A stretch of 64,000 nt of DNA from Thalia democratica (lineage: Eukaryota). Where the stretch lies: contig OZ241832.1 of the NCBI GenBank assembly GCA_965202585.1, forward strand, positions 51,894,001 through 51,958,000. The letters are read 5' to 3'. The translations under genes were made by a program, and so were the position numbers. The notes below the pieces were generated by a model. The model saw only the letters and a list, made by a program, of their open reading frames with translations, made no database searches and was not told the origin of the DNA. Each line of letters begins with the position of its first letter. Positions within the stretch are counted from its first letter, which is position 1. Positions 30,052-39,701 of the stretch are shown in pieces.

Positions 30052-33000
30052 TTATAATTCGTCCTTCTTGTTGAGTTCTTCTTCTTCTGGTAACTCGTCA
30101 TCTGCGTCTTCTTCAACATCCTCCTAAAAAAATATTATATGTTTAGCATTTTTATCCAGTTTATGTTGATTTTTATTAAGAAATAAAATTACCTGTTTGG
30201 GTTGCTATAAAGAGTTAATCAAAGAAATATTACAACTAAATGAAAATAGAATCTATATTTCTATTTTAGCAATTTATTAAATTATGACAATAGAAAAACA
30301 CTCTTTTAAAAAGGCTTAATAAAAATTGTAGATATACAAATAAGGACACAACTATAAACTTTTCTAAGATACGTCTTACTTTATAAATTTTATCATAAAT
30401 AAAATTTATGCTGAAGGAAATATTAATAGTTTGTATTTCTTTTTTTTACATAATTACTACTCAATATTTCAAAAAATTCTCAAACTTTTCTTTCTGATCT
30501 AAACTTTCAGCGTCCGCAAACATATGATAAATAAAACAGGACAAAAATAAATAAAACAAAATCTGTATAGTCAAAATCTAAAGTTCTTTGTGTTCTGTCT
30601 TCTTCTCCTCTGCAGCTTCCTTCTTCTTGCCCATGAACTCGCCGGCGGCCATCTCGGCGTCCTTCCTCACCGCTTCCTCGGTCGCCTTCTGCATGGCCTC
30701 CTCCGTGTCCTTGCCGTCCAGGCCCATGCCCTTCATCATCATCTCCATCTGCTGCTGCATGCCCTTCATGAAGTCGTCGTCCGAAGGCACCATCTTGTCC
30801 ATCATCTCCGCGAACCACCGGTCCAGTTCCTCCATGTGCTGCGTCTCGTCCGCCTTCTCGTGATCGATCAGGTCCTGTGTGACGTCATAACGAGGTTGAG
30901 ACGGTTATTTGTGAGGTCACTGCAAACCACCGGCACTCCAAAAAGTCTATTTCACGTCAAAACGGAAGACCTAGTCTAAAACTCCATAAAAGAAGAGCTT
31001 TTAGGCATTTCAAGTCTCTACCAAACAGCAACGCAGACATCCTAATGTGACGTCATAATAAACTTTTCGTGTCATTCACGTGACTTTAAACCACCAAGTT
31101 TCTACAATACTTCAAAGTAAAACCCTAGATCTATTCAGATAAACAATCTCAAAAATGTCTACAACTCAAAACATGTTTCTACAAATCATACAAACGTCTA
31201 CAAAAAAAATCTAACATTTTTGCTTACCGTGACGTGCTGTTTGTAAAATGGCTGTAGAACAAAATAATGATAAATAAATAGTAAAAGACTGATACATAAT
31301 TTGATGAAAAATTTTTCTTTACCTCTGTTGGCGGTTCCATACCAGTGTAATGGTTGTGTTCCTACAATTTTTTTAATTTATTCAATTTTTGCCTCAACTT
31401 TCAGAATCTACTCAAACCAACTCATGTCCTCACTGCAAAGAAAACTATCTCTATAGAATATCAAACCACTAACTTTCTAGCTATCAGGAAAATATCAGAA
31501 AAATAATCGGCTAATCAGAAAAAAATATTTCCACAACCGTAAAAATCACCACTACTTTTAAACCTACAAAACTTTCCTTTGACGTAGTAACAATAGATCT
31601 AAACGGTACTTTTTTGATGCAAAGAAAGCATCTAGAACTTTCAAACAATTTATATATATATATATATAACTAAACACCAAACTACGTCTACCTCGTCAAA
31701 CTCTTCGTCTACGTTGGCACTTACGTCGGCTCCGTTCGACCTGACGAACTTTTCCATGGCTTCGACTTCGCGGTCTCCGCTGTAGTCCACAACCTTGTCA
31801 CTTCCCTGTTGGTGTCAATATATAATGAGCATATGTTATTATTCACATTAAGTTATTATATACTAACTATTAATAAGTTTCAATATGCGTTGACAACACT
31901 TAATAGGTTTTAAGTTTAAAATTTAACAGAAAGACGAAATTTAAAAGGTAAATTAAAATGTTTGGCTTTTTTTTTTCTTTTAAAATTAACTGAATTATTT
32001 TATTTTAAAATTATTTCAAGCCAAAAATCTTTTAATTGTGAGAATTAAAATAAATTATTAAAAAATATATATCCGGTTTTTAAGTTTTAAAAATACTTTT
32101 TAATTAGGCGCCAAAAATTTTGAGTCATTTCAGTACAAAGTTTTCTAAAATGCAGCAATAAAGACACGTTTATTTGCCACGCACAAAAGAAAAACTAAAA
32201 CTACGTGTAGGCAGCTAAGAGTTCTATAACTGTGTTTCCGCAAAGCGTGGAGTAATTCAAACAATATTAAAAATATTTTTTGTTTTAAAAATGTTAGTGT
32301 GCGCTGTTAAAAAGCAGCAAACTTACGGATGGGAAGAACTTCAAAGTGGGGAATCCCTGGATCTCGAACTCTGACACCTCGTTGGCGGTGGAGTCCATCT
32401 TGGCGATTATGACGTCATCGTCGTCCTTGAAGGCCTCGCCGAGTTTGTCCCATTTGGGCGCCAGTTGCTTGCAGTGGCCGCACCACGGAGCGTCTAAACG
32501 GAAGCACTAATGACTAATTCTATTCTATGTATTAATACGTGTGTAAGCGAATATTGTGTGTAAGCTAAGGTGTAGTTAGAATTTTAAATATTATATCAGA
32601 GCTGGGACTTGCTATATATATATTATTTTTAGTTTTAAACAGAACCCTTCAATACCTTCAAATACTAATGATTTTTAAAGGCAGTAGTATTTGTAAAAAC
32701 GAAGTTTTAAAAAAATAAACGTTTAGAAATATAAACCTATTTGACACTTTACAAACTAACCAATCTAAATAGTGCATTTTTATATACTAGCTAATTGATG
32801 AATGTTGACTTGTCTTAAAACAATGAAAAACGAGAAAGACAATAGAGTTTAATGAACTTATTCAAAAGGGTACTCGAATATTTCAAGTGCTTTCAAAGTA
32901 AACTGGCCACACTATCATGCAATAAAAAACGTTAAAACTATGCTGCTGTGTTTTTAATGCGTTTTGTAATTTCAGTAACTTAAACAGAGGTTTTATTTAG

Positions 33001-36000
33001 ACAAACTATGACACGTTTTGATTTTTAGAAAAGTGAATGAGCAACTAATCATTTGATTGTAGTCAATTAAATGATACACTAGTTATAAAAATACACCGTT
33101 TGTCAATTTCACTTGAAAGTTTAACAAACACTTTTTGTTACCTTTTGAAAACCACAAAAAGAGAGCTTATTTCTAGATCTATGCTAAAACCTTCTAAAAA
33201 ACCTTCTAAACTGCAACCTACATTTTTTAACGTACTTTCAACGGGTCAAATTTTGGGAAGAAGAGCATTGTGGGGTAAGCGCCCACGAATTTAAACCCGG
33301 GAATGTCATTTTTAGTAGCGTCTATTTTGGCGATGACAACGTCGGGATCTTTTTTGAATTTATCTGCAAGTCGCAGCCATGTGCCGTACATCGCGTGTGA
33401 ATGCTCACACCAAGGCGCGTCTGAACACAACAAGTTGAAAAATCAGTACAATACTTGGAATTAATGAGAAGTATGTTTACTAACTCACAAAATGTATTCT
33501 GTTTATAAATGGCTTGGAAACCAATGAGATGTTCACTTGATTATCTACCTTGCTTATCAACGCAATAAACAGCTAAGCCTTGGATTTTAGTAGAAATTAA
33601 AGTGGAAAATTTATTTTAAGTTCAAAACTTAAGGTCTTATTACAAATGTTAGTCTGTGAACTAATACAAAACTTTGGATAAAATGTGATGTTATTTGATC
33701 TAAATGACGCGTGAAAAACTCACAGAATTCGACGAAGACCTTCTTAGTGGAATCGAAAGCGACCTCCTTGAAGTTCTTTCCGACGAGGACAGAGACAGGG
33801 TTCTTGTTCCAGTCTTCTGGGATCTCTTCCGACATCAAGTGGCGGGCAATTTCTCCGGACATGACTCCGGCGGCGAACTTGGTGACTGCTTCGGCTGACA
33901 AGTCTTGTCCTTCCGGCTTGAACTTAGCCATGTTTTCTGCCATTTTGATCACCCTGTAGGTTGGCACGTCCTTTTCGGAGAGTCCGAAGAATTCCATCAC
34001 TCTCTTGTTCTCCTCGACGTCAGAGTCGATGTAGATGAACAACATCTGTTGGTGAAAATTTGTTTTATTGTTTAGTTTGTGTACACTGGTATTCAAATTT
34101 AAATCACTAGTTTTTAAACTTTGATGAAAATGGATAACAATTTTTTATATGTGAAATTAAAATAGTTAAGTCCCTTAGAGTACGTCCTAAAAAAACTTCC
34201 AAGTTTTCAAATGTACAATGTGTTACTGAGGTTAAGTTGCCACTCACCTTTCCTTTGAACTCCTTGGCGGCAGTCCTGAAAGCGTCGGTCTGAGCTTTGA
34301 ACTCTTCAGACTTTTTGGAGAGGAAGAGAAGTGCGTGGTTCTGGATATCTCCACCGAAGATTTTGGGGGCAGACTGTTTTGAGTTGGAAATCATTTACTT
34401 GCTTCATTGTTTTTTTTTTACTTTTATATTTTCAGAATTAGTAACTTCTGTTTATATTAGAAAAAATTGTCTTTCTTTTTGTAAATAATTTCAACAAATG
34501 AATATGTTTATACTTAGTTATTCCTATACTATGATATAATACTTTTTGGTTCAAAATTTTTTTTTTTTCATTTTGTTTAAAGTTTTTACGTTTTAACTAA
34601 TAAGTCACACTTTAAATCACACAACTATTGAAAATATTTTCTAATAAGCAACCACTATCAAAAAAAAACAACAAAAATTCTAACCAACAGCAATTTAAAA
34701 ATTTTTAATTAACATTTGAAAGTAACTTTGACATAAGTGCCATTCAACAAACAAAATATTAAAGCTGTTAAAATTTGTTTGGACTTGAAATTTTAAAATT
34801 TTTAGTCACACTAACCTCGCTGGTGAATTCAGAGAGAAGAGCGATCTGGTTTCCTTTGACGAATTTGGCAAGGTCATCGGCGATGGCACCTTCGAAGTCA
34901 GCGCGTCCTTCGTCGAACTAACACCACAAATAAAAATAAGCAAAAAAAACTACTAAAAATCAACACTTCTACTAATAAAATATCTACAAAGTTCACAGCA
35001 TTCTCAGGTCACGTTAGAACCTTATCTGAGAACTCTTCTAGCAGCGGGTGCTGCTCCCCTTTAATGTCAACTATTAAGTTGTCTCCGCTTTTGTAAATGG
35101 CAGAAAGTGAACCCTAGGTTTTTACTTAAAAATGAAATACATAAAAAGTGGAGAAAGTGTTTACTTCCACAAGTAGTTAGTGTTATGAAGAGTATACATT
35201 TTTTATAAAAGTATCTATTATAAAAGTGGCTTCCAATCAAAAACAAGTTGAAAATTATTTTCATTCAATTTATTAAAAACTGTGACAAAATTTCTCATAA
35301 ATACCTTTTTGAAGACAGCAACTTTGCCAAGTTCAAGACCGGCAGCCTTGGCGGTGGCAGCATCAGAGACTACAAAGAATGGGACATCATCGAAAGAATC
35401 AGCAACCTTGGTGAAAGCTGCACCTTCTTCACTTGATGGATCCTAGTTAAATTTTGATTTTATTATTTACACATTTTATTATTTAGCTGTTATTAATACT
35501 ACTTATTAAACTATCAAGTTTACTTTAAGTAGTTAATCTTTTAAGTTGTATTTTGTGAGATTTAAATAAGTTTGATAGCAACTAATCTTACATATATTTT
35601 TTTATTGTTAACCATTTATGGATGTTCAAGTGTTGTTAAATAAAATTACATAACTAACGAAATATGTAAAGTACTGTGTTTAATCTCTAGGGTTCTAATA
35701 CATTTAGTCAGAAAAAAGTTGTCTATAGATAATTTAAATGTAAAAAGGAAGTAAGAGAAGGATGTTATGATAAATGAGCCACATGACTACTAGAAATTAC
35801 CAATAAGTTATATCAACTAACAGCAAAGTATCCGACAACAGCAACTTCATTGGCGTCCTTAGCCTTGTTGAGGGCTTCTTCTCCGGACAATGGGGTTGTT
35901 GGTGGTCCGGTCTTTTTCTTGAGCCAGTTGACAATGTCAGCAGATTGACGTCCACCTATTGTTAATGAGTTTAAATAATTACAAGAATAAATTTTCTTAA

Positions 36001-39000
36001 AAAGCTTATGTTTATATAGAAAAATTATTTCAATATGTTTTTTTACATTATCTGATTTAAAGAAAATATTTTAGTGTAAATGTTAGAATAATATTTATTA
36101 AAAACCTACTAAAAAAGTTTTTTCTTATAAAACCAAAAAACTTAAGGTAATAAAATTAATTAAAAAACAAAAGCATAAGTAATAACTACTATTCAATAAC
36201 CACCATTAAAATAAACACACACACTGCTGCTTATATTGCAATTCTCTATTGACACGGAAACTGCCTAAGGCAAATTCACAATAAGAACTAGTAGCTGTTA
36301 CAACAATCCTAGAAACCAATATATTTATATTCATTTTACACACTACTACGTGGCTATAGCAAGGAAATAAACAGCACGCTTGTCAGCTTGCCATTGTAAG
36401 TTGTCTGGTGGTCACCGTGGTTTTTCCAAAAGAAAAATGTTGGGTACCCTTTTACATGGAACCTCTTAACGGTTTTTGGGTTGGCATCACCATCAAGCTT
36501 TGCTAGTTTACAATCGGGTATGTCAGTAAGCAATTGAGTGGCTGCTTTTTTGTAATCCTTGTCCATGTGAATGCAGTGTGTGCACCATGGGGCGTCTGAA
36601 AATTAATTCAAATTTTAAACATGCATATTAGAACTATTATTTACCGCCGTATTCCTTGGCCTCTCCGTTCTTAAAGAACTTCAAAGTTGGGTATCCTCTG
36701 ACTTCGAACTTCTCAGCTGCCTTCTTGTGGATGGTGGCGTCAACTTTGGCCAGTTTGATTTCAGATTCTTCAGCAAGGAGGGCACCTGCAGCTTTGGCGT
36801 ATTCGGGAGCCAAGGCTTTGCAGTGGCCGCACCATGGGGCGTCTTAATTGTTTGATTGTTAAAATAAAAGTTCATTTTTTACATATTATAATTACATACA
36901 TAATAAAGTTAAATTTCATGGGGCGTCTTAATTGTTTGTCATGATTATTAATCAAGTTAATTATTAGTTACATAATAAGCTACATGATTAAGTTTTTAGC
37001 TTTTCAGAATAAAAAAAAATACAACAATTAATTGATTATAATTTAGTTTTGTTATCTTATTAAGTGAAAAAAAACATTTAATTGTATATAATTTTGTTTT
37101 GTTACTTTAATAAATTTTGATAGTAAAAAAAACAACATTTAATTGTTTTTCATTAAGCTCAGATAAGTATTTTATTATAAGTAATATTAAGTATTAATAT
37201 TAGTAACAAAGTACAACAATTAAATGTTTATAATTTAGTTTTGTTACTTTATTAAATTTTGATACTAAGAAAAAAATACACTCAATTATTTATAAGCTCA
37301 GATAAGTATTTAATTATAAATTACATTTTAAGCTTATAACCTAATTATAGGGATTAGTAATTGTATCCAACTTTAAAGATTAAGTTTCTAGAAAACTATA
37401 AATTTATGGAGTAAAACAAGACAATTTCAATTTTTGTATTAGCCAAGTTATGTTAATATAAGGTTTTATAACAGTTAACCCTAACCTAAAGTCAATTTTC
37501 ACAACTTAAGTTGTAAAACTTTTTTGAGCTTTTTAACTTACTCAGCTTTTTGGTTATTGAAAATTAAAAACATTACAAAAACTAACATTTTAAATATAGT
37601 CAACTAAGAATAATAACATGGTATTTTAAAATTTTAGTATGCCTGATTTTTTTTAACTTATGATAATAAAATTGTTTTAGCACTGCTTTTACGGCGTCAT
37701 GATTTTTTGCATTGTAAAAAATTGAATATTAAAATATAGTTACTTTTTTATACTGACTCCCAAAAAAATTTTTATTTTTGGAAAAACATTTAGTAAAAAA
37801 ATATTAAACTTTAAAAACAAAAGAAAGATTTAAAAATACTGGTTTCACCTTTTTGTAAATTATTTTATAAACTTGATTGCAAGCATATAATCTTACAACT
37901 TATCTAATAACTAAATTCATTGTCTTTCTTCTCTTCCTTTAGAATTTATTTAAAATATTTTTTTTATAAAAGTAGAAAATCTTTGCTAACTATTTTGAAG
38001 TTTATATATTCAAAAAGACTACTTTGGTAAACATACTTATTAATACTAAGAAAATAGGCTTCTGATGTTATGCTGCAAAATATACTAAAATGGCTGAACA
38101 CATTTTATCAATAATTAATTACTTCAAGAATACAACTATTGTATAAAACAAACTTCAAAATTTGTTAAGTTTTATAAGAAAATTATTTAATAAAAGAAAC
38201 AGTTTCTCAACAATTTTTTTATAATTGAAAAATATTTAAGTAATAAAAAGATAAGTAGTTATATAACATAAAACAGATTTCTGCACATTTATCATTGTGT
38301 TATTTTTATATCTTGATTAAAATTTTTAAACAAATCAAAATTCTTATTTTTCATTAATATCTTAACATGTCATACTTTCAACATATTATTAAATCTGTAG
38401 TGCATTTAAATGACAAATTTAACAGAAAATTTGAATAGAAAATATATATTAAACATTTAACAAAACAGCTTCAAATAAAACCAGCATTGAATTGACAAGA
38501 TACATTAAAAATTGAAAGGACTCATAAGTCAAAATTTAAGATATTATTTAAGATATATTATTTAATATTAGTTTGTGTTAAAACACATATGAATATTCAA
38601 ATTATATTAATTTTAAGACAAATAATAGTAAAAACCATTTTCTGAAAACTAAAATACTACTGTGGTAAAGTATTACTGAAATTATATTTAAATTTTTACT
38701 AAAACTTCAACTAAAACTGAATAAATTGAGGAATTTTAAAATGATCTTTAAAACTTTCAAATAAATAAACAAAAATAAAAACCAAAATGAATTAAACAAT
38801 GTGTTTGCAATCTGCTTATATATATTTCCTTTCTTAAATAGTCAGTTATATTCCTGACAAAACTATATAGCTTTTAATTTAACAATGAAAATTGTTTGTA
38901 AACTATTTGTTAGTTGATATTGATCAAACCCTAAACTTAATAAAAAAACAAAAACTGAATATACTATTATTTGGTAGTTGCATATATAAGTTAAACAAAA

Positions 39001-39701
39001 GTATTATAAGAATTTTACACAGATAAATAATTCATATGATTGTATTTTTTGACAGCAATATAAAATTATCATAAGCTAATGAAACAAAATAAAATATTGT
39101 ATTATACATAGGTTTAATTTCTTTAAAAGAATGTTATTGTTAATGTGTGGGCTAATGGCATAGGGGTCCTTATGATGGCTTAGAAAACTTTCTTAGTTGA
39201 ACATTGCAAGACAGAAACCCAGTAGTCGACACATATATAAAAAATATTTTAACTATTGTGGAAACAAGTCTTAGATATATTATTATAACTACTTAGTAAT
39301 AAATTTAATATTTAGAGAAAAATTAAATACAGCTATATATTTTTATAGACTATATTCTTCAACAAATTATGTATTTTTTTGTACATGTGTCAGTCATGGG
39401 GTTTATCCTACAATATATAACTCAAACTGCCATTAAGACCCATCAGACCACTTGAAGAGTTACAAAATAAAATTTAAAAATATGTTTTACTAAAAGTACA
39501 TACTATATTTATTAATGTTAAATCTTCAAAATTTATATTAAAAAAAAATTATAACTTACAGAATTCTACAAGAACAAATTTGTTGTCCTTGACTGCATCA
39601 TCAAAGTTGTCATCAGTCAACACCAAGACATTTTCCTCAGTTTCAATTGCCTTCACAGACAAAAGTCCAAAAACAAGAAAAACTAATGATAATAACTTCA
39701 T
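30052..39701 (-). CDS. P4HB: Protein disulfide-isomerase, canonical isoform (about 497-508 aa, a-b-b'-a'-c, KDEL); exons 39701-39560, 36842-36645, 35955-35822, 35442-35305, 34917-34816, 34373-34248, 34045-33724, 32493-32327, 31805-31725 (or -31692), 30204-30193, 30123-30052
   Basis: Signal peptide, two YAPWCGHCK motifs with GYPT/GFPT cis-Pro loops, x-linker [10 protein letters not shown], and acidic tail [23 protein letters not shown]. All phases are consistent. Confidence 0.93.
30578..31361 (-). CDS. P4HB: PDI alternative C-terminus: microexons 31361-31323 ([13 protein letters not shown]) and 31251-31228 (PFYKQHVT), plus terminal exon 30874-30578 (Met-rich, HKEL)
   Basis: All are phase 0 with AG/GT sites and lie inside the last canonical intron region on the same strand. 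The terminal exon ends KTEHKEL*. Confidence 0.75.
33236..33420 (-). CDS. P4HB: PDI alternative a'-domain exon (WCEHS, CxxS)
   Basis: [62 protein letters not shown]. Phase 1-0 like the canonical exon 32493-32327, with CAG| acceptor and AAA|GTACGT donor. Confidence 0.85.
35021..35113 (-). CDS. P4HB: PDI alternative b-domain exon
   Basis: 93 nt, phase 0-0, TAG| and AAG|[33 protein letters not shown] aligns with canonical [34 protein letters not shown] ([11 protein letters not shown] vs [11 protein letters not shown]). Confidence 0.7.
36392..36595 (-). CDS. P4HB: PDI alternative a-domain exon (WCTHC), GC-AG donor
   Basis: [68 protein letters not shown]. Same phase (1-1) and same acceptor context (AG|ACGCCCCATGGTGC) as the canonical exon. 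The donor at the homologous position is G|GCAAG. Confidence 0.82.

Follow-up and report, generated by a model that had tools for sequence, protein, structure and literature searches.

Within a 64,000-nucleotide stretch of the Thalia democratica genome (contig OZ241832.1, positions 51,894,001 to 51,958,000; the window), the minus strand carries at 39701-30052 a P4HB-type protein disulfide isomerase (PDI) gene in which three internal exons occur as phase-compatible tandem pairs: 2a (CGHC) with 2b (CTHC), 5a with 5b, and 8a (CGHC) with 8b (CEHS). Two terminal exons are also present at the locus, one ending in KDEL and the other in HKEL. Our reading, to which we give a probability of roughly 0.8, is that this single gene makes modular isoforms from its tandemly duplicated exons, that the arrangement arose in the ancestor of a small clade of marine plankton and that it has been kept by selection. 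At two positions the choice is visible in RNA. Exons 2a and 2b are both spliced, apparently as alternatives between exons 1 and 3; the swap covers about 65 residues of the a domain, running from its active site as far as the cis-Pro loop. The 3′ end supplies either a short KDEL tail or, via two microexons, a helical acidic HKEL tail of about 120 amino acids. In the 5 and 8 pairs RNA showed the canonical member alone; 8b and 5b, we infer, are used as well, at a stage, in a tissue or under a condition that the available bulk plankton RNA does not cover.

The data comprise marine metatranscriptomes containing the locus (X1-X6), DNA of organisms A and B (X7-X10) and organism C (X15), which is RNA since its contigs are spliced. 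The presence of the locus in X1-X6 marks the animal as planktonic. Contigs of X1, X2, X9 and X15 were aligned to positions 30600-36599, and the RNA results are those among the matches listed from these runs. X1 matches the window exactly at exon 2b; X15 comes from a related species. The canonical junctions were all seen (3-4, 4-5a, 5a-6, 6-7, 7-8a and 8a-9, plus the letters of 2a-3). For exon 2b, an X1 contig lies on 36460-36595 with 0 differences and stops exactly at the 2b acceptor though the aligned stretch continues, at a depth of 7.9 against about 62 for the constitutive exons. A 397-nt contig of X15 consists of 164 letters, then all of 2b (36391-36595, 6 differences), then 28 letters; where the 164 letters adjoin 36595 they match the end of exon 1 in reverse complement, and the 2b match stops at the predicted G|GCAAG donor. 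Its depth is 9.8, compared with 10.3 for the 2a-3 junction. A reading of 36392-36842 as a single exon (best RNA run at a share of words of 0.42) was rejected, partial 2b then being found in the same run. Junction letters joining the two microexons, m1 and m2, to the HKEL exon are present in both X1 and X15. Apart from one base, the letters that X1 (depth 17) and X15 carry between 30875 and 31323 match m2 in reverse complement, and an X15 contig covers the HKEL exon at 30604-30860 with 1 difference, X1 also showing depth there. Judged by depth, roughly one transcript in ten carries 2b in X1, and about one in two in X15; the HKEL tail has similar shares.

The gene model was derived from the window sequence, which is AT-rich animal DNA with a GC content of 21-38% per 2 kb. 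The first-pass annotation had described the three phase-matched internal duplicates and the two terminal exons, and their coordinates, frames and likeness were all confirmed, with two corrections to the earlier model. Exon 2b uses a GC donor (G|GCAAG), and exon 9 on the KDEL path ends at 31692 rather than at an inner gtaagt (31725). An X15 contig reads through this inner site to 31692, its loose end at 31691 being the start of the KDEL exon, and a spliced contig from a relative (L018) has the same long exon 9 on the KDEL path. The inner gtaagt (31724-31719) is in frame, encoding Val-Ser, and is also found in another relative (L016); it may be a second donor, a candidate for the HKEL path. Canonical splicing (1-2a-3-4-5a-6-7-8a-9-last) yields 494 amino acids with the short exon 9 and 505 after the RNA-corrected end, and the all-variant splice, modelled with the short exon 9, is an open frame of 574 amino acids. 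The canonical product has a hydrophobic N-terminus, a putative signal peptide as read by eye, carries WCGHC in each catalytic domain and terminates in KDEL; the KDEL and HKEL ends were read from the sequence.

Each of the variants is a local duplicate of the exon beside it. In tblastn searches against the 64-kb window, 2a and 2b match with E = 8e-16 and 8a and 8b with E = 1e-14, both pairs at 45% amino acid identity. The four thioredoxin exons (2a, 2b, 8a and 8b) find significant matches in the window only among themselves, with across-pair identity of 33-36%, each variant being nearest its own neighbour and not the other thioredoxin exons. No second copies of the remaining exons were found in the window. 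Exon 2b lies 49 nt after 2a, 5b lies 103 nt before 5a and 8b lies 742 nt before 8a. The match of 5a with 5b has E = 0.07 over the whole window, yet it is the best non-self match, aligns to the very end of both exons and has a score reached by only 2 of 20000 shuffles (P = 1e-4), a likeness that on alignment is weak but real. All four thioredoxin exons pass the Pfam gathering score of PF00085 (E = 1e-20 for 2a, 1e-13 for 2b, 7e-17 for 8a and 3e-8 for 8b), exon 7 matches PF13848 (Thioredoxin_6, E = 1e-10) and the full translation is collinear with PDI. Among solved structures the best matches of the protein are PDIA1, PDIA3, PDIA4 and TXNDC5, with PDIA1 aligning at matching a and a′ positions. 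On human PDI, exon 2b falls on the a domain and 8b on the a′ domain; the best match of 8b is to PDIA1 a′ positions 397-451, with TXNDC5 topping the list by summed score. On its sequence the protein is a PDI family member of the P4HB/PDIA1 type.

The design recurs in relatives. A search with the 2b peptide returned three exon-sized proteins at 97, 82 and 70% identity, encoded on Tara and other marine metagenome scaffolds that each carry 2a followed by 2b, and the 2a/2b tandem was found in L002-L011. Across five taxa 2b is always 204 nt long and always has the G|GCAAG donor, the 2a-2b spacer measures 49, 50, 56 and 40 nt in four relatives, and the amino acid identity of 2a in relatives is 98, 95, 85 and 82%. 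Beyond the window species, 2b is present in four taxa, 8b in two and 5b in one. A search with exon 7 led to two informative sets of contigs, L012-L015 and the scaffold L016 with L017. In the species at 82% identity (L012-L015) the 8b orthologue lies 150 nt after exon 7, is 185 nt long with AG/GT sites, has 87% amino acid identity and retains CEHS. A more distant, compact relative (L016, a 7.8-kb scaffold; also L017) has introns of about 40-70 nt and holds the whole design in about 4 kb, in the order exon 1, 2a (CGHC), a 40-nt spacer, 2b (CVHC, GC donor), exons 3, 4, 5b, 5a, 6, 7, 8b, 8a (CGHC) and 9. At its 3′ end follow microexons of 39 and 24 nt, a helical acidic terminal exon ending in KEEL and then the KDEL exon, of which an orthologue is also found in L018. 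Its 8b (L016, 4519-4701) is 185 nt long with 59% amino acid identity and has the active site CKFC, that is two cysteines with an unusual Lys-Phe dipeptide. CKFC is the 8b motif of L016, L017 and L019, as against CEHS in the window and L012-L015. The 5b orthologue of L016, L017 and L019 occupies the same intron, is 93 nt long with AG/GT sites and is matched by tblastn with E = 5e-5. Between the window and L016, amino acid identity is 64% for 2b, 59% for 8b and 35% for 5b, compared with 54-82% for the constitutive exons.

The 3′ module is preserved in comparable detail. The microexons of L016 (5338-5453) keep their lengths of 39 and 24 nt, and the junction between them encodes G[MI]EPPTEP[FY]Y in the window species as well as in L016. 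The alternative terminal exon contains another conserved stretch, EELD...PSxDD; as judged from sequence conservation, both may be candidate partner-binding motifs.

An outgroup PDI (L020 and L021, 59% identity in exon 7) has single CGHC exons and a KEEL end, with no duplicated exons and none of the extra elements. As these are absent from the outgroup and present in L016, the duplications are placed after the outgroup split and before the split of the window lineage from L016. In the outgroup (L020, 4588-6600, and L021) exons 2a to 6 are fused into one, so intron positions appear fluid in this gene among these plankton lineages. Two further searches added no new members: JGI metagenome contigs scanned with the 8b alignment contained generic PDIs only (33-41% identity) and no spliced 8b, and a representative search with exon 7 recovered no close full-length relative, the best having about 55% identity. 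Tara unigene ('merc') proteins among the exon 7 matches were set aside, all being canonical CGHC forms from distant species.

Sequence divergence indicates that 2b and 8b are maintained. Between the window and the species at 82% identity (Table 1), constitutive exons have dN/dS values of 0.02-0.12, and those of 2b (0.05-0.10) and 8b (about 0.04) are comparable. The lower value for 2b comes from the nearest species, where synonymous changes number 8 and nonsynonymous changes 2 (ratio 0.05). By binomial tests both exons have significantly too few nonsynonymous changes (P = 4e-8 for 2b, 3e-11 for 8b); the comparison with L016 is saturated at all synonymous sites. For organism B a single difference is listed within 8b, a synonymous GTC>GTA at 33335, and a nearby intron piece (32761-33118) has at least 18 differences in 358 nt (about 5%) among the matches listed. 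By these comparisons 8b is under strong purifying selection, and relic status is ruled out for 2b, 8b and the alternative tail. For 5b the argument comes from its kept length, phase, splice sites and position where introns are otherwise unalignable, together with the tblastn match, and it is unlikely to be a relic. The first-pass annotation had held that the variant exons are intact and under selection, and had named orthologues carrying stops or frameshifts with dN/dS near 1 as the contrary outcome. Orthologues proved intact in several taxa with dN/dS of 0.04-0.10 for 2b and 8b, which bears the claim out; for 5b the evidence is only suggestive.

Table 1. Exons and spacer of the PDI gene in window coordinates, with Nei-Gojobori estimates for the window against the species at 82% identity
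Feature	Coordinates	Strand	Description	dN	dS	dN/dS
Exon 1	39701-39560	-	Putative signal peptide and start of a domain, ends ...VLVEF, phase 1; common to all isoforms			
Exon 2a	36842-36645	-	Canonical a-domain core, WCGHC, 198 nt; 2a-exon 3 junction letters in X1, X2, X15	0.034	1.52	0.02
2a-2b spacer	36644-36596	-	49 nt, GT...AG ends			
Exon 2b	36595-36392	-	Alternative a-domain core, WCTHC and extra conserved Cys (IPDC), 204 nt, GC donor	0.095	1.01	0.10
Exon 3	35955-35822	-	End of a, start of b; shared; in spliced RNA contigs			
Exon 4	35442-35305	-	b domain; shared; in spliced RNA contigs			
Exon 5b	35113-35021	-	Alternative b/b′ junction exon, 93 nt, phase 0/0, weak splice sites			
Exon 5a	34917-34816	-	Canonical b/b′ junction exon, 102 nt; 4-5a and 5a-6 junctions in X1, X2, X15			
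Exon 6	34373-34248	-	b′; shared; in RNA contigs	0.052	0.93	0.06
Exon 7	34045-33724	-	b′, x-linker, start of a′; shared; PF13848	0.079	0.66	0.12
Exon 8b	33420-33236	-	Alternative a′-domain core, WCEHS, 185 nt (2 mod 3)	0.092	2.4 (near saturation)	about 0.04
Exon 8a	32493-32327	-	Canonical a′-domain core, WCGHC, 167 nt (2 mod 3); 7-8a and 8a-9 junctions in RNA			
Exon 9, long form (KDEL path)	31805-31692	-	End fixed by RNA (X15)			
Microexon m1	31361-31323	-	39 nt, encodes 13 aa; HKEL path; X1 and X15 junction data end at 31323			
Microexon m2	31251-31228	-	24 nt, PFYKQHVT; HKEL path			
HKEL terminal exon	30874-30578	-	Alternative 98-aa acidic, Met-rich tail			
KDEL terminal exon	30123-30052	-	Canonical short acidic tail			

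The arrangement of the exons suggests how the choices could be made. In the exon 2 pair the spacer of 40-56 nt has good GT/AG ends and is probably too short to be spliced out, so that use of the 2a donor would skip 2b. The conserved weak GC donor, of a kind typical of regulated exons, would let factors set the use of 2b. As 2a and 2b are both multiples of three, joining them in one transcript would keep the frame, and such a tandem a-a isoform may exist; among the matches listed, from contigs that are short, exon 1-2b and 2a-3 junctions were seen and a 2a-2b junction was not. The 8 pair would be exclusive by frame, since both exons are 2 mod 3 (185 and 167 nt in the window, 185 and 179 nt in L016) and the inclusion of both or neither shifts the frame. 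Exons 5a and 5b are both multiples of three, and no exclusivity mechanism is proposed for that pair.

The variant modules may retune the redox and substrate behaviour of one scaffold, as separate vertebrate paralogues do. Exon 2b keeps the catalytic a-domain features of its exon: APWC, the histidine before the second cysteine, the AKLD lysine and the cis-Pro GYPT. Its dipeptide is TH here and VH in two relatives, and immediately ahead of KLAKLDG all five taxa (window, L002, L007, L009 and L016) have a third cysteine (IPDC or IPSC) that is absent from 2a. It is predicted to be a redox-active site with altered tuning. Exon 8b retains APWC, AK/SID and YPT, together with a conserved helix, TWLRLA, particular to this exon. 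In this species its a′ site could attack or hold a substrate cysteine and would not resolve the bond alone. Since the compact relative has CKFC at this position, CxxS is not the defining state of 8b; the one-cysteine state, as the aligned motifs have it, is a lineage feature and not the reason for the exon's existence. The alternative tail is acidic (net -15), is predicted to be all-helical at modest confidence (pLDDT 68) and ends in an ER retrieval-type signal, and its exon has a GC3 of 0.88, like a highly expressed exon.

Several observations weigh against our reading. Exon 8b has zero RNA depth in X1, X2 and X15, and 5b has no assignable depth in the same three sets. With 8a at a depth of 100-700 in X1 and X2, 8b would lie below about 1% there; X15 is shallow and also has holes in 8a and exon 7. 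The link from 2b to exon 3 follows from a contig match ending at the donor, and that from exon 9 to m1 is likewise indirect, neither junction being among the matches listed. Selection on 5b is marginal (P = 0.04) with saturated sites, and its splice sites are weak. Relatives with compact introns of about 50 nt may splice a 40-56 nt spacer, and the steric mechanism is unproven. A word search of the protein database with 8b found no 8b-like fragment, although such a search is uninformative, since gene calling seldom picks up exon frames that are short and AT-rich. Two signals that might have been taken as use of these exons were discarded. X2 depth in the bin 35000-35199 traced to a piece of about 40 nt near 35148, in low-complexity intron at 80% likeness, and L019 contains both 5b and 8b with their flanking introns retained. 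L019 (1-1479), from a JGI metatranscriptome of the compact relative, is half-spliced: the 6-7 intron and an intron inside exon 7 have been removed and all introns around exons 3, 4, 5b, 5a, 8b and 8a are kept. This may reflect slow splicing of the alternative regions or a mix of DNA and cDNA in assembly.

These silences allow a narrower account, in which functional alternatives exist for exon 2 and the tail alone, 8b and 5b, once used, being now silent or becoming relics in this lineage. It draws on the contrast between zero depth for 8b and 5b in three RNA sets and roughly 10-50% of canonical for 2b and the HKEL tail, on the weak splice sites and marginal selection of 5b, and on the second cysteine of 8b, missing here and present in the relative. 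However, 8b is an open frame of 185 nt with AG/GT sites and 87% amino acid identity despite near-saturated synonymous sites (dN/dS of about 0.04, P = 3e-11), the CEHS common to two species implies that the Cys-to-Ser change is old and that constraint continued after it, and 5b has kept its 93 nt, phase and sites in a species with otherwise unalignable introns. We therefore consider this account improbable. For 8b and 5b, the contrary outcome named in the first-pass annotation, that no transcripts include the variant exons, still stands; for 2b and the HKEL tail, transcripts were found.

Less probable again is a strict two-in-one gene, in which four modules are chosen together to give exactly two products, one a housekeeping PDI and the other specialised for trapping or chaperone work. 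Similar depths of 2b and the HKEL tail, each near half of canonical in X15 and both near a tenth in X1, would fit a linked choice of those two. Yet X1 has 2b and the HKEL tail with no 8b or 5b, so the modules are not all chosen as one block, at least in X1; short contigs cannot show linkage; and the CxxS motif behind the trapping idea is CKFC in a relative. The first-pass annotation had proposed just such a pair of products from one gene. Of that proposal modular splicing survives, with 2b and HKEL in RNA, whereas their linkage as a second PDI is unsupported and so is the trapping role, its motif not being conserved in orthologous 8b. That the variant exons are an artefact of assembly or annotation (collapsed paralogues, haplotigs or chance open frames) is a general risk in an AT-rich draft genome, and the 5b open frame spans only 34 codons between stops, but it is highly improbable given the same interleaved order in at least four taxa and in metagenome contigs that were assembled independently for several expeditions, the continuous cover of the 8b and 5b regions and their flanks by organism B DNA contigs, and the RNA junctions joining 2b to exon 1 of this locus.

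We thus favour a single gene making modular isoforms. Its fullest form, held tentatively and at rather less than even odds, is free choice at all four positions, which would give up to 16 enzymes on one b′ platform and have one PDI gene replace a paralogue family, including a stage-, tissue- or stress-specific CxxS a′ form. If true, the gene would provide a domain-swap series made by nature and would be the first PDI to have redox active sites selected by splicing. PDIs are central catalysts of disulfide formation in the endoplasmic reticulum (ER), and their tuning by the active-site dipeptide, the second cysteine, the b/b′ junction and the tail has been studied mostly by mutagenesis and comparison of paralogues. 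The gene offers a natural set of swaps on one scaffold, long kept, in which isoforms differing by one module are directly comparable. It clearly exemplifies a housekeeping enzyme whose catalytic sites are exchanged by alternative exons, with a conserved splicing signature of GC donor, 40-56 nt spacer and frame-locked pair. A search of the full-text literature found no PDI with alternative or mutually exclusive active-site exons, in agreement with the first-pass remark that no described PDI gene of this architecture was known; the mutually exclusive exon mechanism itself is already known.

The protein shares with vertebrate P4HB (PDIA1), PDIA2 and PDILT the plan of a-b-b′-a′ followed by an acidic tail and ER retrieval signal, and variation falls in the same places as among those paralogues, namely the active-site dipeptide, a lost catalytic cysteine and the tail. 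Unlike the paralogues, it carries this variation as alternative exons of one gene, with the b′ substrate-binding domain common to all forms. PDIA2 (PDIp) combines CGHC with CTHC, and PDILT is non-catalytic. The variants here are local copies of neighbouring exons and not orthologues of either, their relatives having CVHC (2b) and CKFC (8b). Orthology to PDIA2 was examined and did not hold: CTHC lies here in a and not in a′, 2b copies 2a, relatives have CVHC and the outgroup is without it. The likeness to PDIA2 and ERp44 raised earlier thus persists as analogy only. CxxS motifs occur in the ER thioredoxin-fold proteins ERp44 (CRFS), AGR2 (CPHS) and yeast Eug1 (CLHS and CIHS), and 8b of the window and the L012 species is analogous in having Cys-x-x-Ser in an otherwise complete core (APWC, AK[IM]D and the cis-Pro YPT). 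There is no orthology; 8b occupies the a′ position in a PDI of four domains, and the a site of that protein stays CxxC. Descent of 8b from these families was not borne out, its nearest relative being 8a, and the list of solved-structure matches to 8b contains no ERp44 or AGR chains.

Mutually exclusive exon pairs formed by tandem duplication are known from PKM exons 9/10, tropomyosin exons 2/3 and the Dscam clusters of arthropods. The pairs described here resemble them in being adjacent homologous exons of near-equal length and equal phase, with probably one exon per transcript in the 2 pair and, in 8a/8b, a pair whose exclusivity the frame would enforce. As in tropomyosin exons 2/3, the spacer within the 2 pair is very short, and use of the 2a donor would skip 2b. 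The PDI gene differs from all three systems in that a housekeeping ER enzyme carries three separate pairs and an alternative terminal module, and in that its pairs swap redox active sites.

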